A stretch of 64,000 nt of DNA. Source: Adineta vaga (Eukaryota; Animalia; Rotifera). Numbering within the stretch: the first letter of the stretch is position 1; the number at the start of each line of letters is the position of its first letter. A program made the position numbers and the translations under genes. The notes under the pieces are model-generated. The model was not told where the DNA came from and made no database searches. It worked only from the letters and a program-made list of their open reading frames with translations. Positions 4,849-35,796 of the stretch are shown one piece after another. The stretch is from the NCBI GenBank assembly GCA_021613535.1, contig CP075495.1, forward strand, positions 15,376,001-15,440,000, in the 5' to 3' direction.

Positions 4849-5318
4849 GGTAGTAGTTTTACTAAATTAAACAATTTTTTACTTTTTGTGATGTCAATGA
4901 AGACTCAAATATTCACACGAAGTTATTCTTATCAATGTTTGTCTTGTGAATGTTATCAGGGAAGGAAAAAACGAAAAATGCATTGAAAATTTTCAATTGT
5001 TTTCGTTTTTAGGACAACGGTTGGTCCAAAATACTCTTCATGAGAAACGGTTTTTTGACTTAAATGACATACTCTTATAATTTCACTATTTGTCAATCTT
5101 TTGATTTTGTTATTACAATTTTACGGTAACGTCTAAACTGATCATTAGTTTTCGTCGACAAAAAATCAATGGATTTTAATGATCAAATATCTCGTATCAC
5201 ATAGGTTTATTTGAACTAGTTCTTAGGATAAGGATAACTGTTGTTGAGTTGAAGAGAGGAACAAGAAAAAAAGAAGATTAGAAATACGAAAGTCTTTGAA
5301 AATAATTTTTCGAAGATT

Positions 5319-6085
5319 TTATAATTTTGAAGCAGCAGCTTTATCCAAATACCAAATCAAATCATTAACTTGACCAATTGGATATTTCGTATTTTTATCT
5401 TTTAGAACTTCTTTAACAATCGTTGATTTACTTTCACCAGTAACAACAACAATTTTATATTTCGATTGATTTATTGTATTTAATGTCAATGTAACACGTT
5501 CAGGTGGTGGTTTTGGTGAATCTTTAACAAATGTTACTAAACCTTGATTAACATTTAAAACCGAATGATCAGGAAATAGACTAGCTGTATGTCCATCTGG
5601 TCCCATTCCAAGTAAAACAATATCAAATGTCTAAAAGAAAAGAAAATTCAAATTTACTTTTTCGAAAAACAAAAGAAAAAGTTCAAATAAACTTGATCAT
5701 CTTCATCCAATATTTCGATTAATTTATTTTCATAATCTTGTGCACATAGTTCAACAGATTTTAAATCAGGATCAATTTGAATAACATTTTTTTCTGTTAT
5801 TGGTAATTTTTTAAATAATTTTGTTTGATAATTTGAATAAGTTGAATCATCCGATGTAAATGGAACAAATCTTTCATCAACAAAAAAAAATCGAATACGT
5901 GCCCATGGTAATTGTAAACGTGGAAGAATTGATACTAATAAATCAATTAATGATCCACCTGATAAACCAATTGTTATTAATTGTTTTTCATTAATTAATT
6001 TTAAAACAATTTCTTCAAGTTGATAACCAAGTTTTTCAGATAAAATTTCATTATCATCAATTATATTGACATTTGATGATGACAT
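5319..6085 (-). CDS. PGLS: 6-phosphogluconolactonase, copy 1 (exons 6085-5693, 5630-5319)
   Basis: IGLSGGSL, FFVDERFVP, FDIVLLGMGPDGHTASLFP and DSPKPPPERVTLT motifs; 62-bp GT-AG intron keeps the frame. Confidence 0.95.
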
Positions 6086-6297
6086 TCTTTTCTAAAAATC
6101 TAAAACATACTTTTTTTAGAGAATATCATAAAAATTAGATCAAGAAAATGTTTCCAATTCATTAATCTAAGAATATCGATGGATAGATCTCAGTACCTAA
6201 GTTTTATAGATAAACTCTGACTCTCATTTATTCCATTGCAACAAAATTAATCAGAATGTTTATTTTATCATAAAATAAGAAAAAAAAATCTCATTTT

Positions 6298-7323
6298 TTA
6301 ATTTTTCATATTTTCAAAAAGAATCGATCTTAATTTTTGATAACAATCTAATCTTAATTTTGCATAATTAATATAATCAAAATCCAATAATGAAACATGT
6401 GATTGAACTAACGCCCAAAGTCCCCACATTAAATGTGAAAGTGCAGAAAATTGATCAATTAAATGACATAATTTATCATCAATAATTTGTTTTTCTATTC
6501 CACGTGTTTGAAAATAGACTTTTAACCAACGTTTTTGTTCGTCACATGTTGGATATAAACTAAAATCAGCATCATCAACACCAGCATATTCTACAAAATG
6601 ATTTGCAATATCAAATAAAGCATAATTAATATGTGTATATTCAAAATCAATAAAAGATATTTCATCATTTTTTTTATCATAAATAATATTTTTAACTAAT
6701 AAATCATTATGACAAAGAACAAGATCTTTATTTAATTGTGGATTTGGTATTAATTGAGGAAGAATTATTGTTTCAATTATATCAATATCAGATATCAGTT
6801 GAGAAATATCTTTTATATGATTTTCTTCAATTAAATTAATAAATTTTCGTATTAATGTAATAACAAATGGTTTTTCATTTTGTTCTTTTAAAGGAATATT
6901 ATGAAATTGTGCTAATTTAATTGCAATTAATTTAGAAATGTTTTCTTCTCGTACATTTTCTCTTGAACATGCTTGACCAGGTGCAAATTCATAAATAAGT
7001 CCATTATGAAATTGAATTAAAACACGTTGAGATAAAACTTTATTTTCCGATAATTGAGTCATTGCATTTAATTCAGCATGACGATCAATAAATAATTCCG
7101 TATGTTCACCAAATAATTTAATAACTAATGCATCAGATTCATCATCAAGTGTTCGAGTATTAAAAAGACCTAAGATAGAATTTGTTATACCTTCAGTAAA
7201 TGTTACTAAACGTGTATTTGAAGAATTCCAATCAGGTCGAATAACAGATATTACATTGTAAATATCATTAGAAAGATTTGTTAAAGATAATGTTATATCT
7301 TTAATAATTGGATATGAAATCAT
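6298..7323 (-). CDS. ETNK1: Ethanolamine kinase, copy 1 (intronless, 341 aa)
   Basis: FTEGITN, FGEHTELFIDR, LCHNDLLVKNIIY (Brenner motif), FIDFEY...FDIANHFVEYAG, SHLMWGLWALVQ. Confidence 0.92.
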   Translation of the reverse strand: MISYPIIKDITLSLTNLSNDIYNVISVIRPDWNSSNTRLVTFTEGITNSILGLFNTRTLDDESDALVIKLFGEHTELFIDRHAELNAMTQLSENKVLSQRVLIQFHNGLIYEFAPGQACSRENVREENISKLIAIKLAQFHNIPLKEQNEKPFVITLIRKFINLIEENHIKDISQLISDIDIIETIILPQLIPNPQLNKDLVLCHNDLLVKNIIYDKKNDEISFIDFEYTHINYALFDIANHFVEYAGVDDADFSLYPTCDEQKRWLKVYFQTRGIEKQIIDDKLCHLIDQFSALSHLMWGLWALVQSHVSLLDFDYINYAKLRLDCYQKLRSILFENMKN

Positions 7324-7606
7324 CTTGAAAAGAAATGAATGAATGAATGAATAACGAATTACGTTTTAATCATTGATATGCTTCATAGATTTCTTCTCTT
7401 TCTTTATTCTCCTTGACTTGATATTTATATGTTTATGAAGCATAGAACAAAGGACTTAAAAGATAGGTAGGAATCTTTTACATACTTTAATCTCGACGTT
7501 ATTGTATAACAATAAATACGAGATTCTGATGTCACGAATAAATAATAAAACAAAACCCTATTCTTATGATATTAACAAAGATAATATCTTAGTTTATTTT
7601 GAAATG

Positions 7607-8455
7607 TTATTTAACAGCAAGAACAAAAATTCTTATTGGAAGAAGTTCACGAACAACTTGTTTTAATTTTGATCGTTGATCTTTAATAACAGTAAAACCA
7701 GCTCGATGAGCAATATCATAAAATTGTTCACCAGTACGAACATAATATTGATCATCAGGATCAAATTCTGGTTCGTGACCATTTGCAACAGAATTATCTT
7801 TTATCACAATTAAACCATCCTTTTTTAATGTTAATTTTAATTTTCTTAAAAGTTTAACAAGATCATCACCATCTAAATAACCTAAAACCCCTGAAAAAAA
7901 AACAAGGCAAAAGAATTTTATCATTTCGAAAATATCAAATTGAAATTTTACATTGTGCCCAAATCATATCATATTTCGGAAAATTTTCTAATTGAAGATC
8001 ACCAATTGAACCAACAAATGCTTTACCAATTTTATCATTTTCTCCATTTTCATCAAATAAAGTTCGTGTTTGTTGACAATAATCATCTAATAAATCATTA
8101 ATATCAATATGATCAAAATAACGAGATAAGAGAGATTTTGTTACACGACCAATTCCACAACCTAATTCAAGACAATATGATGTTTCTAATTTTCCATTTG
8201 ATTGCTAAAAAAAACAATAGAAATAAAGGAATGTTATTTGTGTCGATAAAGACAAACTTTAATTAATGTTTGAATTAATTGATTGGATTCTTGAATATCT
8301 GGATCATGAACTTGTGTATATCCACCTAACATTGTATCAAAAGTGTTTGGTTTTGATGAATAATAATCTCGTGTTATTGTTTGTCTCTCTTAAACATTAT
8401 TACGTTCACCTTATACATGGTAAGGTATTTTTGAAGTTCTCTTCTTTTTCGACAT
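7607..8455 (-). pseudogene. NTMT1: NTMT1/METTL11-family alpha-N-methyltransferase, copy 1, with two in-frame stops in exon 1
   Basis: From ATG 8455 it reads MSKKKRTSKIPYHV*GERNNV*ERQTITRDYY (TAA at 8413-8411 and 8392-8390). The rest, including both introns, is near-identical to copy 3. Confidence 0.8.
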
Positions 8456-8549
8456 GTTTTCAAGAGAGAGAGAGACAATAAACTATTAAATTAAATATGG
8501 ATAAAAATATCAACTGTTTATTTTTTTATATTCAATGGAAGCTTTTCAA

Positions 8550-8588
8550 CCAATAAGATAAAACTAAATATATGTTGTGAGAGGGCAC
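8550..8588 (-). promoter_or_regulatory. Conserved CCAAT box plus GAGGGCAC-like motif upstream of the methyltransferase
   Basis: AACCAATA is kept 80-95 bp upstream of the ATG in all three copies (CCAAT at 8550, 21670, 35887), followed by gagggcac / gagggcac / gagaggac in otherwise diverged DNA. Confidence 0.45.
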
Positions 8589-10657
8589 ACGTGTTTTGAA
8601 AAGGAAGGAAAAATAAAAATGAATGAAATTAATAGGCTTAAATTCCTGAAGTTAAAACTCAAATTAAGTCTATCGAATAATAAATTCAATGACACACTTT
8701 CACTGCGAGTTATAATGGAAAGAATGAAAAATTGTTCAACTTCAATATCAAAAGTTGAAACTTACGTAATTGAGATATAGTTCACAAATAAGATGAAAAT
8801 TAGATTTACAAAATGAGCGAATTCAATGATTGAAATTTCAAAATAAATAAAGAATTCTATTAACTCAGAAATAGACAAATAAAATAGATTAATTCAGTTG
8901 CTAATTGATTGAATTCATTGATTTCCACGTCGAGTGGTAAGCATACAGTGTTTTCAATGGAAATTCGTTTATAATGTGAAAAGATAATTTATATTGCTAT
9001 TATTCGCTTCAGATAACTGAAAGTGTGTTCATTTTGAAAATCCATTTGACAGACTTTTTGTTTGAAATAATTCTAGATATGAAAATTTCTCTCTGTCAAA
9101 CATATCCAACTTTTAAGAGAAAAGAAAATTTAATTATGATAATGTACGATTAATTATTAAAATATTTTCGAATTATTTTAAATCCTATTGACAGAAATGT
9201 TCTTATCTTATCTTAAAAATTGTCAATATTTTTTGCATATAGAGAATACATACGGTGAGACTGAGAGCGAAACCAAATCCACTTGTACTAAATTGACATC
9301 GTTGTTCATAAGAACATGATGGGAAAAGACGTCGTTTGTCCAGGACTTGAAGATATACCTGGAAAAAGTTGTCAACCATTTTCACATGCACTTTGACCGA
9401 AAGAATTAAATGTCATACTATGATTGAATTCCAAAGAATTTGTCAATATTTACTTGTTCTTGAAGATAACAAAAACATAAATGAATATTATCAGAAAAAT
9501 ATGAAAGATTCAAATGAAAATCTCGATAAATTATTCGATAATATTAAATTCCACGGATAGACATGAATTCGCACATCGTTTTATTGAACAATTCATTGAT
9601 ATGAAGACATCGATTCCGTAGAATGTCATTTTATTTCTTTCGTGAGAAACATGTTTTAAAATACTTTTCTAAAGTATAAATTGTACTTTTCAACTTAGAT
9701 ACATTGTTTTATGATGTATTATTGTCAAGATTGGAAGTTAGACATACAAAATAGTAAAAAGTTTTCTTTTCCAGCACAACGATGCTCCTTTAAGCTTGAA
9801 ATTCCAGCAGAAAAGGTTCGTTTGTGTCAAAAAATTTTGAAATGCAGAGAATTTTATGGAAAGCTAGACTGTCTCTGGATCTTTTAGATATGATATGACT
9901 TTTTTGGCCAACATTGCCTTTTAACCGAAAAGTTTTCGTGTGAGATATCTCCCATACCGAGTCGATCTTTTCCCTTCTAGATTAGCTTACTTTGGCGTTT
10001 CAATTCTGGCCTCACTGGTTCCAAGTAGAACTCGAATAGCTTTGTCGACTCCAATCATAAAATTATTTTTCTCTCTCATCCTCCCCCTTAGCTCATCCAA
10101 TACCCCAAACTGTAGATTTTTTTATACAAACGCTCACCAATGACAATTCCAGAAGAACTAACATGAGCTTTACTGTGACTTACGTTGTTTACAATTCGAT
10201 CGTGATTTTCAAACATGTTTTGTTTCTTAAGAATGTAGACGAGGGTGTCTATTCGACATCAAGCCTTCATCCTCGTCCACATCTACACCCTGAAGCACTT
10301 GTGGCTTATGAACAGGAACATGAAAGTGCGAATAGGCAATCCATAGAAAGTCGTTTAAAAATTATTAAAGATGGTGATGAGATTGTTAACAGCGTAAGTT
10401 TGCGTTTTCATTCCAGTAAAAATAAGATGAATAAGAAAAAAATAATTCTATATCTTCGTAAAGATTGAATTTAATTAGCGATACGATTTCTTGAGCTCCT
10501 TGGATTTCGTGACAATTGATATTGTTTCAATTGCTGAGTATCTTGTTATAGTTGTTAAATAGATTTTGAATTCAGAATTCTTCAGAGATTTGTGATTTAG
10601 GGAATCCAGACAGTGTTGGTCTTTATTATTTAATGATCGATTAACAGCATATTTTAT

Positions 10658-14734: not shown

Positions 14735-15416
14735 CAGATGTTCCAAAAACTATCCATACACCTCTGTCATTTATTTTTCTTTGACAAAATTTGAAACTGA
14801 ACATTTTTCATCTGTGATCGTGGTAACTGTGACAATTCTGCATCTCGTGCACTTTTCCTAGGAATTCAACTAGTGAAAAGCATTGAAAACGAGCGGAAAC
14901 ATTAAAATGCAGATTTTCATGTACACAAAATCTTGATTTAAATTGTTTTTGAATGATTTCACCTGGTAGAACACAAAACTCAGAGTAAGATGAGTAGTCA
15001 ACGAACTTTCTACGCGTGACCTACGAATAGTTATGAAGACTTCGAAAACTCAAAAAAGTCGTTTTTTGATGTTTCTATCAGGTTTTTTTGGTATTTTTTG
15101 AGTTTTCGAAGTCTTCATAACTTTTCGTAGGTCACGCGTAGAAAGTTCGTTGACTACTCATCTTACTCTGAGTTTTGTGTTCTACCAGGTGAAATCATTC
15201 AAAAACAATTTAAATCAAGATTTTGTGTACATGAAAATCTGCATTTTAATGTTTCCGCTCGTTTTCAATGCTTTTCACTAGTTGAATTCCTAGGAAAAGT
15301 GCACGAGATGCAGAATTGTCACAGTTACCACGATCACAGATGAAAAATGTTCAGTTTCAAATTTTGTCAAAGAAAAATAAATGACAGAGGTGTATGGATA
15401 GTTTTTGGAACATCTA
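14735..15416. mobile_element. Foldback / long-TIR MITE with Tc1/mariner-like termini
   Basis: Arms 14736-15057 and 15094-15415 (322 bp each) are reverse complements with one mismatch seen; 36-bp spacer. The terminus CAGATGTTCCAAAAACTATCCATAC resembles Tc1-type TIRs; TA on the right flank. Confidence 0.85.
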
Positions 15417-16521: not shown

Positions 16522-16813
16522 TTGACTGTGAATCTTTTTTGTAGCTTTTTGAGAAAAAAAACAATTATCTGATAACTTGTCTTAAACTTTTGATTCCTAT
16601 TTCATTTACAAAATGAATTTTATTTGTAAAAAGAATTTCGAGAAAATAAATGTCATTTTTCTTCGACTACTTGGTATTAAGAATATAATGAGAAATAATC
16701 AATTCAAACTGATTTCTTTTATTTATTTTTTCTCATATAAACAGACTACAACAAATAAAATAAAGCACTACGTTGTAGCGTTCTATATACAAAATTAAAA
16801 TACCGAAATGATA

Positions 16814-17154
16814 TGGGAGTGACCAATTTGACTGATACCCCAAGATACGGAATAGGAAATGATACTATTCTAAGGAGGCGTATATAATGAATTTTATACC
16901 AAATGAAAGTTCGTCAAAAATGGTATTTATTAATACTGAAAAATAAGGATTTTGTGAACTCTATAATATTAAAAAGGAGAAATCTTCTACATTGAAAAAT
17001 ATTAAAAAATTCACAAAATCCTTATTATTTAGTATTAATAAATACCATTTTTGACGAGCTTTCAGGTGGTATAAAATTCATTATATACTCCTCCTTAAAA
17101 TAATATCATTTCCTATTCTGTATCTTGGAGTATCAGTCAAATTGGTCACTCCCA
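16814..17154. mobile_element. MITE with long imperfect TIRs and TA target duplication
   Basis: TA|TGGGAGTGACCAATTTGACTGATAC ... GTATCAGTCAAATTGGTCACTCCCA|TA; ~135-bp arms with scattered mismatches. Confidence 0.85.
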
Positions 17155-17169
17155 TATATTATTATTTAT

Positions 17170-18460
17170 TTAATGATGTTGGGTACAGTTGTGATTGATC
17201 AGATGATCTTGAACTAGATGAATTTCGTTGTAGTTGGCGTGAATGTAAAGTATTTGAAATATTCTTTTACAAATAATCGAACTTGGCATTTATGAAAGCG
17301 GAAAATGTGAAGAAGGATAAAACTTTTCCATTAATTCTAGTATAAGTCCAAGATTCCTTGTTACAATTCTGTGATTTTATACAGTTGATGTAGGATTTTA
17401 TTTTCTCGTTGGTGTTGTTAAGAAAATAAAAGTCATATTTGATAAAAATACATATAATATAACACTTTGTTCTTTCCAGTCTTTATATTTTCATGTACTT
17501 AAACTATGTCGAAATTGATACGCGCAATGTCGTAAACCAAATATTAATACAACAATATTTGTTGATATAATTATAATTGGTAAAATAAAAATCAAATCTG
17601 TTAATGAGTATGTGTAGTCATAAGGGTATGTAATATGCATTATCATATGAGAATAGTATTGAATTATTAAAGTGTTACAAAGCAATATGAAATATCATAA
17701 GGTAAAGCAAGAAACGGATAATTATAAATAATAGCAAATATAATAAGAAACATTGTTATTATAAATTCAACGTTTTCGAGTTATTAAATAACGTCGATCA
17801 GTTTTCTATACTTTTAAATTACGTTTAATGCCTAAAAAACCGATTTTTCTGTTGCTTCATCTAATGCACAAAGAAATAAATAAGATACGGTTAGTTTTTG
17901 TTGTGATGATGATTGCATACCTAAAATGATAATGAGTGATATACTACAACATAAATAAAGTGTAAGTTTTACAAATGTGTATCAATAATGATTATGAATT
18001 GTAATGGAGTAAAGATACTAAACATATTGATTGTTGATAACATTCTTTGGCAACAGCTTGTGAATAAATTGATTTGTGAAACATATGTGTTGTTGATTTT
18101 AATGTAAAATATGAATAGAATTATTAGATGAGTTTACATCCTTTAAAATTTATCATAATAATACTTGTTTTCTAAACGTTGTGAAAAAAGATTTTGGTTG
18201 TAATAAATGATTCAATATAAATCAATGCATCTGTAACAAAAGTTTTTTTTTCAACGTCTTGCTACAATCATCTTACGAATACCTAACATTCGAGTCATTC
18301 ATGATTTAACAAAAACGAATCAATCCGATAATATAATATCTAATTAAATCATTTGCTAACAAATTCTTTTCGAATCAAATCATTACAATATTTCTATTAT
18401 TTCGCAAGAGAAGAATGCAATACCTATTTCCAAATCATAATTATTATAGAAGTCTTTATT
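17170..18460 (-). pseudogene. Heavily decayed gene with hydrophobic segments downstream of PGLS copy 2
   Basis: Stop-riddled protein-like frame, an intron-like GTAAAAC...TTTTAG at ~17970-17921, and hydrophobic ORF 17491..17685. Positions 18150-18560 are homologous to ~32330-32770 behind PGLS copy 3. Confidence 0.3.
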
Positions 18461-18585
18461 TAAATGAAGACTTTCATATTATATATCTTTATTGGAACTA
18501 TTCCTCATGATAAAAATAAATGTTGTGAAAATAAAGGGATTAGAAAAGCGAAAGTTTTTGAAAATAATCATTCGAGAGTCGTTCT

Positions 18586-19346
18586 CTATAATTTGGAAGC
18601 AGCAGTTTTATCAAGACACCAAATCAAATCATTAACTTGACCAATTGGATATTTCGTATTTTTATCTTTTAGAACTTCTTTAACAATCGTTGATTTACTT
18701 TCACCAGTAACAACAACAATTTTATATTTCGATTGATTTATTGTATTTAATGTTAATGTAACACGTTCAGGTGGTGGTTTTGGTGAATCTTTAACAAATG
18801 TTACTAAACCTTGATTAACATTTAAAACCGAATGATCAGGAAATAGACTTGCTGTATGTCCATCTGGTCCCATACCGAGTAAAACAATATCAAATGTCTG
18901 AAAGAAAAGAAAATTGAAATTTACTTTTTGAAAGAAAAAACAAAACAAACTTGATCATTTTCATTTAATAATTCATTTAATTTATTTTCATAATCTTGTG
19001 CACATTGTTCAACAGATTTTAAATCTGGATCAATTTTAATAACATTTTTATCAGTTAAAGGTAATTTTCGAAATAATTTTGTTTGATAATTTGAATAAGT
19101 TGAATCATCTGATGTAAATGAAACAAATCTTTCATCAACAAAAAAAAATCGAAGATGAGCCCAAGGTAATTGTAAACGAGGTAGAATTGATTGTAAAAGA
19201 TCAATTAATGATCCACCTGATAAACCAATTGTTATTAATTGTTTTTCTTTGATTAATTTTAAAACAATTTCTTCAAGTTGATAACCAAATTTTTCAGATA
19301 AAATTTCATTATTATCAATTATATTAATATTTGATAAAGAACACAT
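18586..19346 (-). CDS. PGLS: 6-phosphogluconolactonase, copy 2 (exons 19346-18951, 18897-18586)
   Basis: Same motifs as copy 1; 53-bp GT-AG intron. Confidence 0.95.
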
Positions 19347-19437
19347 TTCTTTTTCTAAAAGAAAAGCATTTGAAATATAAAAAAAGAATGTCTTGTCAAT
19401 AGATTTATTTTCTCATAAATAAAAGAAGAAAAGAATG
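19347..19437 (-). promoter_or_regulatory. 91-bp intergenic region: poly(A) signal, U-rich tract and unpaired 3' splice acceptor (candidate trans-splice site)
   Basis: Minus strand: stop TAA, AATAAA (19409-19404), TTCTTTTTTTATATTT, then TTTTCTTTTAG|AAAAAGAA-ATG. No GT dinucleotide between the stop and the acceptor; repeated at 33554-33644. Confidence 0.5.
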
Positions 19438-20463
19438 TTAGTTTTGGACATTTTCAAAAAGAATATTTCTTAAATTTTGATAACAATCTAATCTTAATTT
19501 TGCATAATTAACATAATCAAAATCCAATAATGAAACATGTGATTGAACTAAAGCCCAAAGTCCCCACATTAAATGTGAAAGTGCAGAAAATTGATCAATT
19601 AAATGACATAATTTATCATCAATACTTTGTTTTTCTATTCCACGTGTTTGAAAATAGATTTTTAACCAACGTTTTTGTTCATCATTTGTTGGATATAAAC
19701 TAAAATCTGCATCATCAACACCTGCATATTCTACAAAATGATTTGCAACATCAAATAACGCATAATTAATATGTGTATATTCAAAATCAATAAATGAAAT
19801 TTTATCAGATTTTTTATCATAAATTATATTTTTAACTAATAAATCATTATGACAAAGAACAAGATCTTTTCCTAATTGAGGATTTGGTATTAAATAAGGA
19901 AGAATTTTTGTTTCAATAATATTAACATCAGATATTAATTGACAAATATCTTTTATATGATTTTTTTCAATTAAATTAATAAATTTTCTTATTAATTTTA
20001 TAACAAATGGTTTTTCATTTTGTTCTTTTAATGGAATATTATGAAATTGTGCTAATTTAATTGCAATTAATTTTGAAATGTTTTCTTCTCGTACATTTTC
20101 TCTTGAACATGCTTGACCAGGTGCAAATTCATAAATAATTCCATTTTGAAATTGTATTAAAACATGTTGAGATAAAACATTATTTTCCGATAATTGAGTC
20201 ATTGCATTTAATTCAGCATGACGATCAATAAATAATTCTGTATGTTCACCAAATAATTTAATAACTAATGCATCAGATTCATCATCAAGTGTTCGAGTAT
20301 TAAAAAGACCTAAGATAGAATTTGTTATACCTTCAGTAAATGTTATTAAACGTGTATTTGAAGAATTCCAATCAGGTCGAATAATTGAGATTAATTCATA
20401 GATTTCTTCAGAAATATTGGTTAAAGATAAACTTTTATCTTTAATAATTGGTTGAGAATTCAT
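19438..20463 (-). CDS. ETNK1: Ethanolamine kinase, copy 2
   Basis: 341-aa ORF with the same choline/ethanolamine kinase motifs as copy 1. Confidence 0.92.
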   Translation of the reverse strand: MNSQPIIKDKSLSLTNISEEIYELISIIRPDWNSSNTRLITFTEGITNSILGLFNTRTLDDESDALVIKLFGEHTELFIDRHAELNAMTQLSENNVLSQHVLIQFQNGIIYEFAPGQACSRENVREENISKLIAIKLAQFHNIPLKEQNEKPFVIKLIRKFINLIEKNHIKDICQLISDVNIIETKILPYLIPNPQLGKDLVLCHNDLLVKNIIYDKKSDKISFIDFEYTHINYALFDVANHFVEYAGVDDADFSLYPTNDEQKRWLKIYFQTRGIEKQSIDDKLCHLIDQFSALSHLMWGLWALVQSHVSLLDFDYVNYAKLRLDCYQNLRNILFENVQN

Positions 20464-20740
20464 CTTGAAATAAACAATTCTTTTTATTATTATTATATAT
20501 ATTTTTCTTTCTTTTGTTTATTATCCTACACTTGATATTTCTATAGAAAATGATTAATCGAACTACTTACGTGTTTTGTAAATATTTTTCATTCGCTATT
20601 ACTCATCTATTCAAACCGTTCTCGATCTGGTTGAAAGAGTGTTTCTACTATAGATAAACTAACGAACCAATCGAAGAATGAAATAAATTGAAACAAATAG
20701 AAATATTCTTGTGAATATTAACAAGTTTTTATTGTCAATG

Positions 20741-21590
20741 TTATTTAACAGCAAGAACAAGAATTCTTATTGGAAGAAGTTCACGAACAATTTGTTTTAA
20801 TTTTGATCGTTGATCTTTAATAACAGTAAAACCAGCTCGATGAGCAATATCATAAAATTGTTCACCAGTACGAACATAATATTGATCATCAGGATCAAAT
20901 TCTGGTTCTTGACCATTTGCAACAGAATTATCTTTTATCACAATTAAACCATTCTTTTTTAATGTTAATTTTAATTTTCTTAAAAGTTGAACAAGATCAT
21001 CACCATCTAAATAACCTAAAACCCCTGAAAAAAACAACAAGATAAAAGAATTTTATCATTTCGAAAATATCAAACTGAAACTTTACATTGTGCCCAAATC
21101 ATATCATATTTTGGAAAATTTTCTAATTGAAGATCTCCAATTGAACCAACAAATGCTTTACCAATTTTATCGTTTTCTCCGTTTTCATCAAATAAAGCTC
21201 GTGTTTGTTGACAATATTCTTCTAATAAATCATTTATATCAATATGATCAAAATAACGAGATAAGAGAGATTTTGTTACTCGACCAATTCCACAACCTAA
21301 TTCAAGACAATATGATGTTTCTAATTTTCCATTTGATTGCTGAAAAAAACAAAAGAAATAAAGAGATGTTATTTGTGTCTATGAAGACAAACTTTAATTA
21401 ATGTTTGAATTAATTGATTGGATTCTTGAATATCTGGATCATGTACTTGTGTATATCCACCTAACATTGTATCAAAAGTTTTTGGTTTTGATGAATAATA
21501 ATCTCGTGTAATTGTTTGTCTTTCTTGAACATCTTCACGTTCACCTTCCATACGTTCAGGCACTTCCGAAGTTTCTTTCTTTGTCGGCAT
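20741..21590 (-). CDS. NTMT1: NTMT1/METTL11-family alpha-N-methyltransferase, copy 2 (3 exons)
   Basis: TFDTMLGGY, DIQES, CLELGCGIGRVTKSLL (SAM motif I), YDMIWAQW-VLGYL, GLIVIKDN and ELLPIR match the NTMT1 motif order; two short GT-AG introns. Confidence 0.85.
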
Positions 21591-23164
21591 ATTTTCACGA
21601 GAAAAGAAATTTTAAATAATGAATATCAATATCTACTGTTTCTTCATATTCAATGATAGCTTTATTCAACCAATAAGAAAAAATTGTATGTATATATATG
21701 TAAGAGGGCACGTACGTCTTAGAAAAGAAGGGAACAAATAAAGGAGAACAATAATTGAAATTTGTGAACGTAAATTTAAAATAAATTGGATTCAATAATA
21801 TATTATGACTAGTTTGCGATCAAAAATTATTGTTTCAATCTAAAGATGTTTCGAATGAAAAATTCAATAGCACGCTTTTTCTATAAATTGTAATCGAAAA
21901 AATAAAAATATTACCGAACTTCAATATCAAAATTTGAAATTCACATAATTGAGATATATTCTTGAAAACAATTAGGCTAAAGGTAATCTATTATCTAAGA
22001 AATTTCATTTATTAAATGTATGGTGAGACAAATGGATATCACTACAACTACATACAAATCTAGGCATTCATAGTCACAGAAGATTAACGTAGTATTTTAA
22101 AGAATGATCGAACGCAAGCGAGTGAATTTTCTAATTTATTTTCTGCTTTTGTCTATCGATTCGAGGTGAAATTTGGAAAAAGATCTACATAGGTGTTTGT
22201 GTGAAAAAGGAAAACGAAAAACACACATGTGTAGTGATATTGACTCAATTTCAGTGATGTAAAAGACAAAACGGCAGATTTATTATTCGAACTTAACTAT
22301 TATTGGTGGATTCAAACACAAATATGACATCCATAGTTCCATTTTCATATTCGTCTCTCGACAAATTCCTCAGAAATGGTGGATACGCTCGACATCGTAT
22401 AGAATGTATCACATTGGTCACACGTATCTATTATCGTAATACTCTGCCGTCTTGGAATACTATTGTTTATTGTATGTTGTCATATTGGCATTAAATAATG
22501 GAGTATTATGGAAAGAGCGCAACATTTAAATTTAAATGACCGTACTGGAACTTCTCAGGTAGATGATACAGAAGGACCATTTATTCTGTATATGCGTGAT
22601 AGAAAAAAGTAATATATGCAACGAAAATAGAACAAGATGTTTAGTTATCTTTTTTTTCCCCTGCATACGGAGCTTTTCGATCAGCAAATACTTAAATGTA
22701 GCTTACGTCCCTACGTCTACTATATTCATTTGGACTGGTTTCTTATTATACTTGTATTATGCCATCTTTTCTTTCTTTTTATTTTTTTCTTGTTCTTTTA
22801 TTAATACCAGTCTTCTATCTACATATTACATACATTGTTGTAGCACAAGCTGTAAAAATTTTCTATTTCTGTGTTAACTGTCATTAAATGCATATGGTCA
22901 TGTATATGACTAGCTGTACAGAATAGTCAAGAATCGTATGTGCTTTCGAGTGAAACGACTATTAAATAAAAGCATAATTAAAAAAAAGTATGTATCACAT
23001 GTTGTTCTTTCTGGCCGAGATTGACAGTCCTGACAAAAAGATCGTCAAAATTGAATAGAATGACGTCTGTAATATATATAAACGAAATAATAATTCATAT
23101 AATAGTCTATTAAATTTCAATCTGAATTTACAGAAAAAAAGAGAGTTTTTTTCCAACGGAAAAC

Positions 23165-27382: not shown

Positions 27383-27572
27383 CCCATGTAAAAAAAGTTG
27401 CAAAAATCATGATTTTTATTAGAAATCCGATGAGAGATCGATTTAAATGGCACGATTTTAATTGATTTTTTCAATTTAATTGATTACTAAGCTATTTAAA
27501 TCGTGCCATTTAAATCGATTTCTCATCGGATTTCTAATAAAAATCATTATTTTTGCAACTTTTTTACATGGG
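27383..27572. mobile_element. Palindromic MITE with CCC termini and 2-bp TSD (CMC/EnSpm-like)
   Basis: CA|CCCATGTAAAAAAAGTTGCAAAAAT ... ATTTTTGCAACTTTTTTACATGGG|CA; ~76-bp near-perfect arms. Confidence 0.8.
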
Positions 27573-28260: not shown

Positions 28261-29901
28261 ATGACTTTTGAATTAATGCCAAACGAAACATTAATTGAAT
28301 GCTTTCAATATCTAAATGGAGTAGATATATTTTATTCTTTCGACCAATTAAATAATCGTTTTTCAAAGCTTATTAGAAGTATTCCCTTACATCTAAACTT
28401 TTACCAGTTAAAAAAGTCATTGTACCATCAGTTTTGTCAATCAATGATATCAAATCCAAAAATGAAACAAAAGATAGTGTCTTTACAATTATCTAATGAA
28501 TATACAAATGGTCAAATTAGTTTTTTATTGTCATTGTTCTCATTGAATGAATTTACTCATCTTCGATCGTTAAAATTATTTAACTTACATGATGATAATG
28601 TTCAACGGATATTACCTATGTTACCATGTTTATTCAATCTTCATTCCTTTTCATACACATGTCAAGAAAATGGTAGTTTACAGATGATGGATGTTATTCC
28701 CAAATTAAATACTCGAATATTATCAATATCCGAATTTAATATTCTCTCACGAGTTACTCGTAAAACAATGTTACATATTATATCATTGAATATCAACCAA
28801 TGTGTTGTTGAAGATTTATTTCATCTATTTCAATGTACAATGATATTGAAATACTTAAGAATTCAATATTTTCATCATGATGATGCTCCAGATAATATGA
28901 TTTTGATTAACATGTCTAGTCTAAATCATTTTATTATTAATGATTTTCAAATCAAAGACTTTGAAACTATTGAATTTCTTCTTACTAAAATGTCAAATTT
29001 AACATTTCTCTCTATATCATCATCTCAATGTCAAATGATCAATGCATTTCGTTGGCAAAATCTCATCACAAATTCACTTAATCATCTACATACATTTCGA
29101 TTTTGTTTTGATTATGTTGATAATAATCGTCAAAAGATGAATGAAATCATTAGAGAATGTCAAGCATTCCAAACAACATTCTGGTATGAACATCATTGTT
29201 TTACAAACTATGAAATCGATGAATTTAGATTACTCGTTTTTACAACACCATATATTCGGAAACAATATGAATTATTTCCAGTGACACGAAAATTCATTTA
29301 TGAATTTAATCATACAAGTCTTTTTGACAATGTAACACATTTAATTTTACATAAAGATTCAATTCAAACAAGATTTCATTACTTTCCAAATGTTACATCA
29401 TTAACATTCAAAAGTTCATATTATTGTCCATTAAGTACTGATGATTTAATTGAAAATTTGTATGAAATTATAAATCCATCGAATATTAAACATTTAACAA
29501 TTGAAGGTGGATACGATACATCAATCGAAAAAATAATCAACCAGCTCACAAATATGAATTCGTTAACAACTAGAAAAACCATTTTATTGTCGTTATTGGA
29601 GAATCAAAAATTATGGGAAACACTCAATAAAAAAATTATTAATTTAAACATATCTGATGGTTATTTATTTACTGACAACGATGTTGAACATGGTTTTTTA
29701 AATTCAATCCATATGATATTTTCAAATATTGAACGACTAGAATGTGACTTAACAGATGTTGATGTATTGATATTCTTCTTAACAAGTTGTTCTAAATTAT
29801 CAATGATCAGTTTAGGATATATTAGCCGTGAAATTCATTCATGGATTGAATCAAATGCATCAAGTTTTGATATTTATTTTGATTTCAAATGGATTAAATG
29901 A
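28261..29901 (+). CDS. F-box protein with LRR-like region, intronless (546 aa)
   Basis: MTFELMPNETLIECFQYLNGVDIFYSFDQLNNRFSKLIR F-box, followed by LxxLxL repeats. Confidence 0.88.
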   Translation: MTFELMPNETLIECFQYLNGVDIFYSFDQLNNRFSKLIRSIPLHLNFYQLKKSLYHQFCQSMISNPKMKQKIVSLQLSNEYTNGQISFLLSLFSLNEFTHLRSLKLFNLHDDNVQRILPMLPCLFNLHSFSYTCQENGSLQMMDVIPKLNTRILSISEFNILSRVTRKTMLHIISLNINQCVVEDLFHLFQCTMILKYLRIQYFHHDDAPDNMILINMSSLNHFIINDFQIKDFETIEFLLTKMSNLTFLSISSSQCQMINAFRWQNLITNSLNHLHTFRFCFDYVDNNRQKMNEIIRECQAFQTTFWYEHHCFTNYEIDEFRLLVFTTPYIRKQYELFPVTRKFIYEFNHTSLFDNVTHLILHKDSIQTRFHYFPNVTSLTFKSSYYCPLSTDDLIENLYEIINPSNIKHLTIEGGYDTSIEKIINQLTNMNSLTTRKTILLSLLENQKLWETLNKKIINLNISDGYLFTDNDVEHGFLNSIHMIFSNIERLECDLTDVDVLIFFLTSCSKLSMISLGYISREIHSWIESNASSFDIYFDFKWIK

Positions 29902-31632
29902 AGTCTTTGGTGATTGGGTGAATCCTTTGAGGATCTCAAATAAATTTATATGACTAGAAAACTTAACATAGTATGATATGAAATCAATCTTTTTTTTAAA
30001 CAAAATATACTTTCAATTAGTATTTCTCATAAACTAATGATTTTCGTCTGTAATTTTTGTGATTCATATAAAAATAAATTTCATAATTATATTCTATTGA
30101 AAACGAAATAAAAGATGAAATCAATGAAAAAACAATGTAACCAAAGATAGCTTTCTCAGATTCTTTTCTCGATTGTAGTTTGCATTATATCGAGATCATT
30201 TGATAGAATCAAAGTGGAAGTTATACTTGAATGAATGATCTATTTAGATTCATTACAACTTTCCAAGACTCGTCATGAGTAGATTTTATGTTCCATTCTT
30301 CGAATCTAGACCATTGTCTTTCTATCAGATATGTCTATATGATGGCACGCCAGTTTTTGTTTTGAGGAACAATAAGAAAATACATGGTTTCAAGTGTGAT
30401 ACTATACAACTCGATAAATCTAATAGATTAGTAGTAATTACGTTGTAGTCGAATAATTCTCTTTATAAAAGTCATAAGATTTTTTAAATTTTATTGTCCT
30501 TCTTCTTTACTTTTTCTTTTTTGTCAAATATGATTGAATCGATATGAAAACTGTCATAGAAATTGATATAGTAAAGACAAAAAAACCATGAGCATTTATT
30601 TTGAGTATTAACAAAAAAAAATTAATAAAGCAAGTCTATGATTAGATCAAGTTCAGATGATATTGGTCTTGTCAAGCGATTCTTGTCATTCAACAATTTA
30701 AAATCAAGATGAATATCGAAATTTGATGCATTTGATTTAATCCATGAATAGATTTCATAGCTAATGTATCCTAAATTGATCATTGATAACTTTGGATATC
30801 TTTCTAATAACAATAACAATTCATCAACTTTTTCAATATCATATTCAGATCGTTTACATCTTAATGAAGGTTTTGAATATAATGAATGAAATGTCTTTTC
30901 ATTAATACAATGATTAATAGAAATGTTCAGTTTTCGAAGCTTTGTATTCAATAATTCATGCGATTTACAATCATGTAATAAAATATATTTGTCAGTTGTT
31001 AACGAATTCATATTTGTGAGCTGGTTGATTATTTTTTCGATTGATGTATCGTATCCACCTTCAATTGTTAAATGTTTAATATTCGATGGATTTATAATTT
31101 CATACAAATTTTCAATCAAATCATCAGTACTTAATGGACAATAATATGAACTTTTGAATGTTAATGATGTAACATTTGGAAAGTAATGAAATCTTGTTTG
31201 AATTGAATCTTTATGTAAAATTAAATGTGTTACATTGTCAAAAAGACTTGTATGATTAAATTCATAAATGAATTTTCGTGTCACTGGAAATAATTCATAT
31301 TGTTTCCGAATATATGGTGTTGTAAAAACGAGTAATCTAAATTCATCGATTTCATAGTTTGTAAAACAATGATGTTCATACCAGAATGTTGTTTGGAATG
31401 CTTGACATTCTCTAATGATTTCATTCATGTTTTGACGATTATTATCAACATAATCAAAACAAAATCGAAATGTATGTAGATGATTAAGTGAATTTGTGAT
31501 GAGATTTTGCCAACGAAATGCATTGATCATTTGACATTGAGATGATGATATAGAGAGAAATGTTAAATTTGACATTTTAGTAAGAAGAAATTCAATAGTT
31601 TCAAAGTCTTTGATTTGAAAATCATTAATAAT
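28933..31632. repeat. 639-bp inverted repeat inside the two F-box ORFs (28933-29571 vs 31632-30994)
   Basis: Arms match with two differences seen (AAG/AAC giving QKM/QNM, and a silent TTA/TTG); flanking coding sequence is strongly diverged. Confidence 0.9.
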
Positions 31633-31986
31633 CAATTTTTCAATATGAGTATCACGTAGATTGAATTGATCAACTGCAACAGTATAATTAAATAGATGCT
31701 CGACTTTAATATATTTTAACATTGGAAAACATTGAAATATTTGAATTATTACTTCCAATTCACAGTTAATAATACTTAATGATTGAATTAACATTTGTTC
31801 ATACATATTAAATAAATGTTGATGGAATTGTGAACAAGAAATATGTAATGAAATATTTCGAATAAGTTTAGAAAAACGATAATTTAATTGATCAAACGAA
31901 TAAACAATATCTGTTGCATTAAGATATTTGAAGCATTTCATGAAAATTTCATTTGGTAGAAATTCTAATTTCATTGCGATAGACAT
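30622..31986 (-). CDS. F-box protein with LRR-like region, intronless (454 aa), convergent paralog
   Basis: MKLEFLPNEIFMKCFKYLNATDIVYSFDQLNYRFSKLIR F-box; ~213 central residues almost identical to the 28261 gene. Confidence 0.88.
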   Translation of the reverse strand: MSIAMKLEFLPNEIFMKCFKYLNATDIVYSFDQLNYRFSKLIRNISLHISCSQFHQHLFNMYEQMLIQSLSIINCELEVIIQIFQCFPMLKYIKVEHLFNYTVAVDQFNLRDTHIEKLIINDFQIKDFETIEFLLTKMSNLTFLSISSSQCQMINAFRWQNLITNSLNHLHTFRFCFDYVDNNRQNMNEIIRECQAFQTTFWYEHHCFTNYEIDEFRLLVFTTPYIRKQYELFPVTRKFIYEFNHTSLFDNVTHLILHKDSIQTRFHYFPNVTSLTFKSSYYCPLSTDDLIENLYEIINPSNIKHLTIEGGYDTSIEKIINQLTNMNSLTTDKYILLHDCKSHELLNTKLRKLNISINHCINEKTFHSLYSKPSLRCKRSEYDIEKVDELLLLLERYPKLSMINLGYISYEIYSWIKSNASNFDIHLDFKLLNDKNRLTRPISSELDLIIDLLY

Positions 31987-32792
31987 CTTATTTGAAATGA
32001 GAAGTGAATGATTATTGTCGTATATGATTTATATATATATGTATACATGTTTTTTATCAAAAGTATGTCCGCTGACGAAGCTGAAATATTCACATAAAAA
32101 TTAGACGATTATTTTGTAGATAAAATTGAAATATTTAGCATAATGAACAGCTTTTCCTGACAGTAGTGTATAATAAATTGAACAGGATGAGGGTGTTTTT
32201 ATTAGGAGAGTTCTAATATTGTTATGATGTCGATTCCTTGGAAAATAAACTGCTATAATTTCATACACTTTACTGTGTGAAGTCGTTTGATTTCTATAGA
32301 CACTTGCCTCTCATGGAGATTTCAATGAATATCTATCGTGTTCTTTATTTACAATTATTTAACTTGAATGTGTAATACTTTTTTTCAAACATTGTTAATA
32401 AACTTTGACTGTAATAAAGAATTTAATAAAATCAATATGTGTAACAAAAGTTTTTTCTCAATATCTTACTACGATCATCCTACGACTACCAAATATAGAA
32501 GTTATTAATGATTCTATAAAAATGAATCAATCCGAGAATATTTTATCTAATTACATCATTTACTAATAAATTTCATTCGAGTAAAATCATTACAACTTTT
32601 CTACAATATCTTAAGAGCAGAATGCAATATCTATTTCCGAATTATAAGTATAAGAAAAGTCTTCATTTAAATGCAGATTTTTATATCATATATGTTTATT
32701 GGAACTGTTCCTCATCATAAAAAACGAATGTTGTGGAAAAAAGGGACTAGAGAAGGGAAAGTCTTTGAAAACAATCGTTTGAAATTGATCTT

Positions 32793-33553
32793 TCACAGTT
32801 TTGAAGCAGCATCTTTATCCAAATACCAAATAAGATCATTAACTTGACCAATGGGATATTTTGTACTTTTATCATTTAGAACTTCTTTAACAATTGTTGA
32901 TTTACTTTCACCAGTAACAACAACAATTTTATATTTTGATTTATTTATTGTATTTAATGTTAATGTTACACGTTCAGGTGGTGGTTTAGGTGAATCTTTA
33001 ACAAATGTGACTAAACCTTGATTAACATTCAAAGCAGAATGATTAGGAAAAAGACTTGCTGTATGTCCATCTGGTCCCATTCCAAGTAAAACAATATCAA
33101 ATGTCTGAAAGAAAAGAAAATTGAAATTTACTTTTTGAAAGAAAAAACAAAACAAACTTGATCATTTTCATCCAATATTTCATTTAATTTATTTTCATAA
33201 TCTTGTGCACATTGTTCAACAGATTTTAAATCTGGATCAATTTGAATAACATTTTTTTCTGTTATTGGTAATTTTTTAAATAATTTTGTTTGATAATTTG
33301 AATAAGTTGAATCATCCGATGTAAATGAAACAAATCTTTCATCAACAAAAAAAAATCGAAGATGAGCCCAAGGTAATTGTAAACGTGGAAGAATTGTTAC
33401 TAGTATATCAATTAATGATCCACCTGATAAACCAATTGTTATTAATTGTTTTTCTTTGATTAATTTTAAAACAATTTCTTCAAGTTGATAACCAAGTTTT
33501 TCAGATAAAATTTCATTATCATCAATGATATTAATATTTGATAATGATGACAT
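32793..33553 (-). CDS. PGLS: 6-phosphogluconolactonase, copy 3 (exons 33553-33158, 33104-32793)
   Basis: Same motifs as copies 1 and 2; 53-bp intron. Confidence 0.95.
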
Positions 33554-33644
33554 TTCTTTTTCTAAAAGAAAAGCATTTGAAATATAAAAGAAGAATGTCT
33601 TGTCAATAGATTTATTTTCTCATAAATAAAAGAAGAAAAGAATG

Positions 33645-34670
33645 TTAGTTTTGGACATTTTCAAAAAGAATCGATCTTAATTTTTGATAACAATCTAATC
33701 TTAATTTTGCATAATTAATATAATCAAAATCCAATAATGAAACATGTGATTGAACTAAAGCCCAAAGTCCCCACATTAAATGTGAAAGTGCAGAAAATTG
33801 ATTAACTAAATGACATAATTTATCATCAATAATTTCTTTATCAAATCCACGAATTTCAAAATAAATTTTTAACCAATATTTTTGTTCATCATTTGTTGGA
33901 TATAAATTAAAATCAGCATTATCAACACCAGCATATTCAACAAAATGATTTGCAATATCAAATAAAGCATAATTAATATGTGTATATTCAAAATCAATAA
34001 ATGAAATTTTATCAGATTTTTCATCATAAATTATATTTTTAACTAATAAATCATTATGACAAAGAACAAGATCTTTATTTAATTGTGGATTTGGTATTAA
34101 TTGAGGAAGAATTATTGTTTCAATTATATCAATATCAGATATCAATTGGGAAATATCTTTTATATGATTTTCTTCAATTAAATTAATAAATTTTCGTATT
34201 AATGTAATAACAAATGGTTTTTCATTTTGTTCTTTTAAAGGAATATTATGAAATTGTGCTAATTTAATTGCAATTAATTTTGAAATATTTTCTTTTCGTA
34301 CATCTTCTCTTGAACATGCTTTACCTGGTGCAAATTCATAAATAATTCCATTTTGAAATTGTATTAAAACACGTTGAGATAAAACTTTATTTTCCGATAA
34401 TTGAGTCATTGCATTTAATTCAGCATGACGATCAATAAATAATTCTGTATGTTCACCAAATAATTTAATAACTAATGCATCAGATTCATCATCAAGTGTT
34501 CGAGTATTAAAAAGACCTAAGATAGAATTTGTTATACCTTCAGTAAATGTTATTAAACGTGTATTTGAAGAATTCCAATCAGGTCGAATAATTGAGATTA
34601 ATTCATAGATTTCTTCAGAAATATTGGTTAAAGATAAACTTTTATCTTTAATAATTGGTTGAGAATTCAT
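33645..34670 (-). CDS. ETNK1: Ethanolamine kinase, copy 3
   Basis: 341-aa ORF with CHNDLL and FIDFEY motifs. Confidence 0.92.
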   Translation of the reverse strand: MNSQPIIKDKSLSLTNISEEIYELISIIRPDWNSSNTRLITFTEGITNSILGLFNTRTLDDESDALVIKLFGEHTELFIDRHAELNAMTQLSENKVLSQRVLIQFQNGIIYEFAPGKACSREDVRKENISKLIAIKLAQFHNIPLKEQNEKPFVITLIRKFINLIEENHIKDISQLISDIDIIETIILPQLIPNPQLNKDLVLCHNDLLVKNIIYDEKSDKISFIDFEYTHINYALFDIANHFVEYAGVDNADFNLYPTNDEQKYWLKIYFEIRGFDKEIIDDKLCHLVNQFSALSHLMWGLWALVQSHVSLLDFDYINYAKLRLDCYQKLRSILFENVQN

Positions 34671-34947
34671 CTTGAAATAAACAATTCTTTTTATTATTAT
34701 TATATATATTTTTCTTTCTTTTGTTTATTATCCTACACTTGATATTTCTATAGAAAATGATTAATCGAACTACTTACGTGTTTTGTAAATATTTTTCATG
34801 TGATATTACTCATCTATTCAAACCGTTCTCGATCTGGTTGAAAGAGTGTTTCTACTATAGATAAACTAACGAACCAATCGAAGAATGAATTAAATAGAAA
34901 CATAGAGAAATATTCTTGTGAATATTAATAAGTTTTTATTGTCAATG

Positions 34948-35796
34948 TTATTTAACAGCAAGAACAAAAATTCTTATTGGAAGAAGTTCACGAACAACTT
35001 GTTTTAATTTTGATCGTTGATCTTTAATAACAGTAAAACCAGCTCGATGAGCAATATCATAAAATTGTTCACCAGTACGAACATAATATTGATCATCAGG
35101 ATCAAATTCTGGTTCGTGACCATTTGCAACAGAATTATCTTTTATCACAATTAAACCATCCTTTTTTAATGTTAATTTTAATTTTCTTAAAAGTTTAACA
35201 AGATCATCACCATCTAAATAACCTAAAACCCCTGAAAAAAAAACAAGGCAAAAGAATTTTATCATTTCGAAAATATCAAATTGAAATTTTACATTGTGCC
35301 CAAATCATATCATATTTCGGAAAATTTTCTAATTGAAGATCACCAATTGAACCAACAAATGCTTTACCAATTTTATCATTTTCTCCATTTTCATCAAATA
35401 AAGTTCGTGTTTGTTGACAATAATCATCTAATAAATCATTAATGTCAATATGATCAAAATAACGAGATAAGAGAGATTTTGTTACGCGACCAATTCCACA
35501 ACCTAGTTCAAGACAATATGATGTACCTAATTTTCCATTTGATTGCTAAAAAAAACAATAGAAATAAAGGGATGTTATTTGTGTCGATAAAGACAAACTT
35601 TAATTAATGTTTGAATTAATTGATTGGATTCTTGAATATCTGGATCATGAACTTGTGTATATCCACCTAACATTGTATCAAAAGTGTTTGGTTTTGATGA
35701 ATAATAATCTCGTGTTATTGTTTGTCTTTCTTGAACATCTTCAAGTTCACCTTCCATACGTTGTGGTATTTCTGAAGTTGCTTTCTTTTTCGACAT
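34948..35796 (-). CDS. NTMT1: NTMT1/METTL11-family alpha-N-methyltransferase, copy 3 (exons 35796-35599, 35545-35293, 35231-34948)
   Basis: Spliced frame is intact: DTMLGGY, LELGCGIGRVTKSLL, IWAQWVLGYL, IVIKDN. Confidence 0.85.

Follow-up and report, generated by a model that had tools for sequence, protein, structure and literature searches.

In the SL2-type operons of C. elegans, neighbouring genes are separated by a spacer of about 100 nt that carries an AAUAAA, a U-rich stretch and an unpaired 3' splice site near the downstream ATG. The operons of tunicates (Ciona, Oikopleura) and the SL1-type operons of C. elegans use one class of spliced leader (SL) for operon and non-operon genes. Among the Gnathifera, the chaetognath Paraspadella gotoi has operons too, defined there by a gene spacing of under 250 nt and by an SL on one or more of the genes (PMC12460157). 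These operons have no operon-specific leader and hold genes of a housekeeping type, and independent origins have been argued for them (PMC12460157). The same paper names rotifers among the lineages with trans-splicing and operonic transcription, and gives no catalogue of rotifer operons.

For bdelloid rotifers, the 23-nt sequence of the SL is given in PMC3795323. The work of Pouchkina-Stantcheva and Tunnacliffe (2005), as cited in PMC1925144 and PMC3795323, concerns SL addition to single bdelloid mRNAs, and a statement cited in PMC1925144 reports that more than 50% of bdelloid mRNAs are trans-spliced. According to PMC7986045, no rotifer operon had been reported by 2021. We found no report of polycistronic units or operons in rotifers in the literature searched, the reach of which stopped short of the 2005 SL paper.

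Our analysis concerns a 64,000-nt stretch of the Adineta vaga genome (the window; 28% GC), taken from an assembly of 100.8 Mb in 6 contigs. In it, genes for an NTM1-type methyltransferase, a choline/ethanolamine kinase and a 6-phosphogluconolactonase (PGLS) follow one another head to tail on the minus strand, in this order of transcription. Coordinates are window positions unless a genome contig is named. The best explanation for this unit, to which we give a probability of about 0.62, is that it is an SL-resolved operon of a bdelloid rotifer.

Like the SL2-type operons of C. elegans, the unit combines co-oriented, unrelated genes with the same spacer layout, and its downstream (PGLS) mRNA receives an SL. 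Unlike them, it has no evident dedicated downstream leader (11 nt of the SL are seen), its SL RNA is unrelated in sequence, and its precursor is one that we infer. The likeness to tunicate and SL1-type operons is found in relatives of A. vaga, where kinase and PGLS lie 17-24 nt apart and where, in one lineage (L033), the poly(A) signal overlaps the stop codon and the acceptor follows directly; the spacers of the A. vaga window, in contrast, measure 91-212 nt and are not near zero. With the chaetognath operons the unit shares the larger clade Gnathifera, the kind of spacing and SL use by which operons are defined there, and genes of a housekeeping type, but the SL sequences differ. It agrees with bdelloid SL trans-splicing in the 23-nt leader, in the GT donor after the SL and in the joining to an AG close to the ATG, whereas the SL work of 2005, as cited, deals with SL on single mRNAs.

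Self-comparison of the window reveals three copies of a block of about 3.5 kb with a mutual identity of 91-93%. A fourth copy, which has decayed, is found 18 kb ahead of the window.

5265-8617: block copy 1
18159-21742: block copy 2
32373-35910: block copy 3
Genome contig 2, 15356516-15359929: fourth, decayed copy (L013)

The duplicated segment, present in three to four copies, contains just a promoter-like block and the three genes. A genome search finds four copies of PGLS, all within this cluster of blocks and none elsewhere. In the fourth copy, the methyltransferase is interrupted by three stop codons in exon 1, and of the kinase only two fragments are left (aa 206-235 and 309-340); the promoter block with its ATTGG, a TTTTTAG acceptor and an intact two-exon PGLS are all kept.

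The window has further features of its own. The methyltransferase of copy 1 shows in-frame stops in its N-terminal region, upstream of the conserved RDYYSSKP motif (8380-8460, minus strand), so that this gene may start at a later ATG or may be decaying. An inverted repeat of about 660 nt, 98.8% identical, occupies 28933-29588 and 30977-31635 with its arms about 1.4 kb apart, and self-complementary stretches (88-95%) lie between the block copies at 14736-15415, 16807-17160 and 27383-27572; all of these may be foldback or transposon remains.

The features of copy 2, in order of transcription, and the corresponding junctions of the other two window copies are as follows.

21670-21674, minus strand: ATTGG (inverted CCAAT) in the promoter-like block, about 80 nt upstream of the methyltransferase ATG
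20741-21590, minus strand: gene 1, NTM1-type protein N-terminal methyltransferase (Pfam PF05891); exons 21590-21393, 21339-21086 and 21023-20741
20706, minus strand: poly(A) addition site of the methyltransferase mRNA, 35 nt past the stop codon
20466-20705, minus strand: methyltransferase-kinase spacer beyond the poly(A) site, 240 nt
20464-20465, minus strand: AG of the TTTCAAG acceptor at the kinase ATG, a probable SL trans-splice site
19438-20463, minus strand: gene 2, ethanolamine/choline kinase (Pfam PF01633, E 2e-60), intronless, 341 aa; stop codon 19440-19438
19347-19437, minus strand: kinase-PGLS spacer, 91 nt, 47% T
19404-19409, minus strand: AATAAA, presumed poly(A) signal of the kinase, read from the sequence
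19355-19356, minus strand: AG of the acceptor TTTTCTTTTAG, the SL trans-splice site of PGLS; first exon base 19354
18586-19346, minus strand: gene 3, PGLS (Pfam PF01182 on both exons, which were scanned separately); exon 1 19346-18951, intron 18950-18898, exon 2 18897-18586, stop codon 18588-18586
33554-33644, minus strand: the same 91-nt junction in copy 3 (kinase 34670-33645; PGLS ATG 33553)
6086-6297, minus strand: 212-nt junction in copy 1 (kinase 7323-6298; PGLS ATG 6085)

The junction between kinase and PGLS has the layout of an operon spacer. An earlier note, made from the letters of this DNA, had described a gap of 91 bp in copies 2 and 3 that holds an AATAAA, a U-rich tract and an acceptor 8 nt before the PGLS ATG, with no GT donor. 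Both gaps are indeed 91 nt long, and each of these elements is in place: the copy 2 spacer reads ...CTTTTCTTTTAG/AAAAAGAA-ATG (slashes mark splice points here and below), its TTTTAG ends 8 nt before the ATG, and no GT dinucleotide occurs in positions 19437-19347. Copy 1 likewise has an AATAAA, followed by tandem acceptors in the arrangement TTTTAG/ATTTTTAG/AAAAGA-ATG. The 3' end of the kinase mRNA presumably lies behind the AATAAA at 19409-19404, where a contig of run X16 (contig 8) ends at 19404 without a tail, and any kinase poly(A) site would be at most about 50 nt from the PGLS acceptor.

Chance levels, computed from the word frequencies of the 28% GC window, place these elements in proportion. 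A TTTTAG falls within 20 nt of a given point with a probability of about 1%, any pyrimidine-rich acceptor within 20 nt with about 5%, and an AATAAA within 91 nt with about 20%. Taken singly, such a junction is only mildly unusual and no more than suggestive; that it recurs in several copies and species goes far beyond what chance would produce. The low divergence of the spacer was considered as a sign of conservation and set aside: between copies 2 and 3, one of the 91 spacer letters has changed, compared with 5% of the kinase coding sequence, and this contrast is not significant (p = 0.056).

The other two genes of the block fit the remaining claims of the earlier note, which had the kinase ATG follow TTTCAAG in all copies and gave the first gene a conserved CCAAT box and no acceptor. 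TTTCAAG immediately precedes the kinase ATG in all three window copies, and a YYYNAG stands in this position at 0.4% of all ATGs in the window. The nearest named relatives of the kinase are bdelloid 'ethanolamine kinase' proteins, the bdelloid matches being 60-76% identical, and its dN/dS between copies is 0.38-0.50. Adineta vaga is itself among the bdelloids to which the protein matches are assigned. Upstream of the methyltransferase, the ATTGG block is conserved in copies 1-3 and recurs in A. steineri and R. socialis as CCTCTCACA...CATTGGTT...ACCATT; the sequence before the methyltransferase ATG has no AG acceptor near that ATG. In A. steineri (L026:1-1956) and R. socialis (L034:1-1029), a large gene encoding an IQ domain lies divergently upstream of the methyltransferase at a distance of 200-270 nt, which suggests a conserved bidirectional promoter region. 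From the methyltransferase stop codon to the kinase ATG the distance is 277 nt in copy 2 and 277-283 nt across copies, and this spacer is the least conserved part of the block between copies 1 and 2.

Transcripts of the locus were read from Logan contigs of four public runs from four studies, aligned to window positions 18100-22100. The methyltransferase has two GT..AG introns on the minus strand, 21340-21392 (53 nt) and about 21024-21085 (62 nt), which are absent from the contigs of three and four runs, respectively. The contigs are RNA-derived, because both of these introns have been cut out. All three genes are expressed: contigs cover the methyltransferase, the kinase and PGLS, the last on both of its exons. 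The 3' end of the methyltransferase mRNA is directly observed in a contig of run X4, which carries 20 untemplated T (plus strand) before 20706, the poly(A) tail of this mRNA, with an AATAAA about 21 nt upstream of the addition site.

The 5' end of the PGLS mRNA comes from a contig of run X17 with a loose end beyond 19356 that reads CTTGGTAAG on the plus strand. In the sense of the mRNA, the contig reads CTTACCAAG+AG/AAAAAGAAATG, that is, CTTACCAAG-AG-AAAAAGAA-ATG. This end corresponds to the final 11 nt of the SL, of which 9 are untemplated, and the junction falls precisely on the PGLS acceptor that had been predicted. Nine untemplated letters would match the SL by chance with a probability of about 4e-6, and the 11 nt fit the two commonest genomic variants of the SL. 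PGLS is thus SL trans-spliced, as observed in one contig of one run over 11 nt of the SL, and the SL tail that had been foreseen at 19354 is where it was expected. A cis-spliced exon in the window, and in the kinase ORF in particular, was considered as the source of the loose end; its sequence, CTTACCAAGAG, is absent from the window, and such an exon is therefore excluded. The earlier note had spoken of a polycistronic unit processed by SL addition: the second half of this claim is borne out by the X17 contig and by 59 genomic SL sites (below), and the polycistronic half keeps the standing of a proposal.

Two further sets of contigs bear on the other acceptors. In runs X1, X4 and X17, contigs of the copy-1 type open with AAAAGAATGTCATC, precisely at the base that follows the second AG, which is compatible with an SL site there and no proof of one. 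At the kinase, contig 10 of run X16 (477 nt) aligns to 19998-20465 and continues for 9 unaligned letters beside a repeat at 20472-20522. This overhang past the AG has the same geometry as the SL-bearing PGLS contig, and the kinase acceptor is a probable site of SL addition.

No contig among those listed for the four runs bridges the kinase-PGLS gap or the methyltransferase-kinase spacer, and contig depth at 20512-20645 is zero in all four. The absence of bridging contigs is weak evidence, because contigs drop rare precursors. Environmental Logan/ENA contigs were considered as bicistronic RNA and rejected: they retain introns, hence are DNA, and are silent on co-transcription.

The A. vaga genome encodes the leader that the PGLS contig carries. 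The published SL, searched at up to 2 mismatches, has 59 sites in the genome, compared with 0 for a reversed control pattern. Most sites are TGCTTATTACAACTTACCAAGAG, and each has a GTAAAT donor behind ...CCAAGAG; the sequence in L001, for example, reads ...TGCTTATTACAACTTACCAAGAG/GTAAAT.... The sites are arranged as SL RNA genes, in which 22 of the 23 nt of the SL are templated; many form head-to-head pairs, often 154 nt apart, and arrays lie on contig 5 at 9.88-9.93 Mb and 10.91-10.93 Mb. There are at least three variants of the SL RNA gene (...TTACAACTTACC..., ...TTAAAACTTACC... and ...TTACAAATTACC...), and the genomic SL variants differ among themselves by single bases.

One head-to-head pair of SL RNA genes (L001:1405-1773; genome contig 1, about 2551064-2551432) matches the whole model, 1-275, of Rfam RF00885, the 'MIR821 microRNA precursor family', with 128.6 bits and an E value of 1.2e-25, under the gathering score of 249 for the family. 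MIR821 is a rice family, and rotifer cDNAs once turned up in a rice EST set; the basis of RF00885 may therefore be a pair of bdelloid SL genes and not a plant miRNA.

Comparison across bdelloids shows how far the gene order extends. Kinase and PGLS follow each other in this order in A. steineri, in two species of Rotaria and in six environmental lineages of bdelloids. The methyltransferase stands in front of them in A. steineri, R. sordida and R. socialis and in three of the environmental lineages. Two further lineages have the pair of kinase and PGLS: in L027 the contig does not include the upstream gene, and in L033 no methyltransferase is called upstream. The distance from kinase to PGLS ranges from 17 to about 1030 nt.

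A. steineri: methyltransferase to kinase 1004 nt, kinase to PGLS 350 nt
R. sordida: methyltransferase to kinase 998 nt, kinase to PGLS 972 nt
R. socialis: methyltransferase to kinase 1887 nt, kinase to PGLS about 1033 nt
L028: methyltransferase to kinase 75 nt, kinase to PGLS 154 nt
L029/L030: methyltransferase to kinase 101 nt, kinase to PGLS 176 nt
L032: methyltransferase to kinase 46 nt, kinase to PGLS 128 nt
L027: upstream gene off the contig, kinase to PGLS 17 nt
L033: no methyltransferase gene called upstream, kinase to PGLS 24 nt

What the kinase-PGLS spacers have in common is the acceptor. TTTTAGAT, that is, TTTTAG/AT, is the only 8-mer shared by most of them (8 of 10 loci), and at the kinase start YAG/ATG is kept in 9 of 10 distinct loci. 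The spacers between methyltransferase and kinase contain no promoter-like block, and the 8-mers they share are AT-rich words only. In L033, an AATAAA overlaps the kinase stop codon and a TTTTAG follows 4 nt later; the same lineage carries a TATA-like box some 85 nt ahead of the kinase. A Rotaria sordida gene model (P0010, 561 aa; L025:4001-6849, GCA_905250125.1) fuses kinase and PGLS across the 972-nt spacer and is probably an annotation artefact of the tandem pair.

A tree of the kinases groups L027 and L033 with the contig 5 paralog of A. vaga in the other paralog clade (support 98/100), and both branches of the kinase duplication include Adineta and Rotaria. Since kinase and PGLS are adjacent in both paralog clades, their adjacency, as judged from the tree, is older than the kinase duplication. 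The contig 5 paralog lies among different neighbours and is not followed by PGLS, but it does have an acceptor, 1 nt ahead of its ATG; an acceptor therefore marks trans-splicing, not membership of an operon. Part of the conservation of order may equally be plain microsynteny, since the divergent IQ-domain gene is likewise conserved in A. steineri and R. socialis.

Taken as an operon, the unit would work as follows. Transcription would start at the CCAAT-type promoter upstream of the methyltransferase and run on through the kinase into PGLS; in a minimum version, one precursor would serve kinase and PGLS. The upstream messages would be cleaved and polyadenylated behind their AATAAA, and the 22-23-nt SL would supply the downstream mRNAs with capped 5' ends, its trans-splice sites being the AG that abuts the kinase ATG and the AG located 8 nt ahead of the PGLS start codon. 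We consider it probable that kinase and PGLS are co-transcribed and resolved by the SL, and somewhat less likely that all three genes share one transcript. The case for co-transcription is a comparative one, and a shared precursor would be the more likely reading because two lineages have spacers of 17 and 24 nt and the order occurs in both paralog clades. The limited space for a promoter between kinase and PGLS counts for an operon as well, as do the duplication of the block as promoter plus three genes and the decayed fourth copy, in which promoter block, acceptor and intact PGLS were kept.

The same facts have to be weighed under other arrangements. In the chief alternative, the three genes would be separate, tightly packed units. 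Kinase and PGLS would each be driven by a compact promoter of their own, placed in the spacer or towards the 3' end of the preceding gene, and the SL, although real, would only trim short outrons, with no polycistronic precursor. The figure of more than 50% trans-spliced bdelloid mRNAs, as cited in PMC1925144, would accommodate such units, as would the acceptor of the contig 5 paralog with no PGLS behind it and the lack of contigs over the spacers (none bridging among those listed, zero depth at 20512-20645). The longer spacers of A. steineri and Rotaria (350-1900 nt) have space for internal promoters and count against an operon, and the conserved divergent IQ gene illustrates that microsynteny can last without one. 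However, the 91 nt from stop to ATG in copies 2 and 3 must also hold the poly(A) signal and site of the kinase, and spacers of 17 and 24 nt in two lineages, like the 46-101 nt between methyltransferase and kinase in three, would put a promoter inside the upstream coding sequence. Moreover, the acceptor is the sole conserved spacer element found, whereas gene 1 has a promoter block shared across genera, and the adjacency recurs in both kinase paralog clades. We therefore regard separate units as a possible but rather unlikely arrangement.

A compromise between the two, which we think doubtful, would be a two-gene operon of kinase and PGLS driven from the 277-nt spacer, with the methyltransferase as a separate upstream gene. 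This A. vaga spacer could have room for a promoter: the methyltransferase poly(A) site maps 241 nt before the kinase acceptor, and the spacer, the least conserved part between copies 1 and 2, is free of contigs. L033, with its TATA-like box ahead of kinase and PGLS and no methyltransferase called upstream, would suit such an arrangement. Against this, the spacers between methyltransferase and kinase measure 46, 75 and 101 nt in three lineages, each ending in YAG/ATG, and the decayed fourth copy keeps the methyltransferase promoter block ahead of its intact PGLS. Finally, the junction might be a look-alike that arose by chance, and the PGLS mRNA might begin at a capped start of its own or with a cis-spliced exon located in the kinase ORF. 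At 28% GC, AATAAA and T-rich stretches ending in AG are common, an AATAAA being expected in about 20% of 91-nt stretches. The RNA contig nevertheless has the 3' end of the SL at exactly the AG of the PGLS acceptor, its loose end matches nothing in the window, and the acceptor is conserved in 8 of 10 loci, so that a chance resemblance is extremely improbable.

The SL-resolved operon thus remains our preferred reading, and the locus lends itself to a test case: it offers an SL site confirmed by RNA, several diverged copies with differing spacers and one natural copy in which the upstream genes have decayed. It is also relevant to annotation, as the public Rotaria model that merges kinase and PGLS into one protein illustrates. 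SL trans-splicing in bdelloids has been known since 2005, and the operon would be the new part. We lean, by a modest degree, towards the view that bdelloids have true SL-resolved operons and that the pair of kinase and PGLS, with the methyltransferase in front, is an ancient one, older than the kinase duplication and among the first documented in Rotifera; together with the chaetognath operons, it would make operons a recurrent feature of Gnathifera. A documented rotifer operon would extend polycistronic transcription, recorded from only a few groups of animals, to another phylum, and would bear on whether operons arise wherever SL trans-splicing exists.
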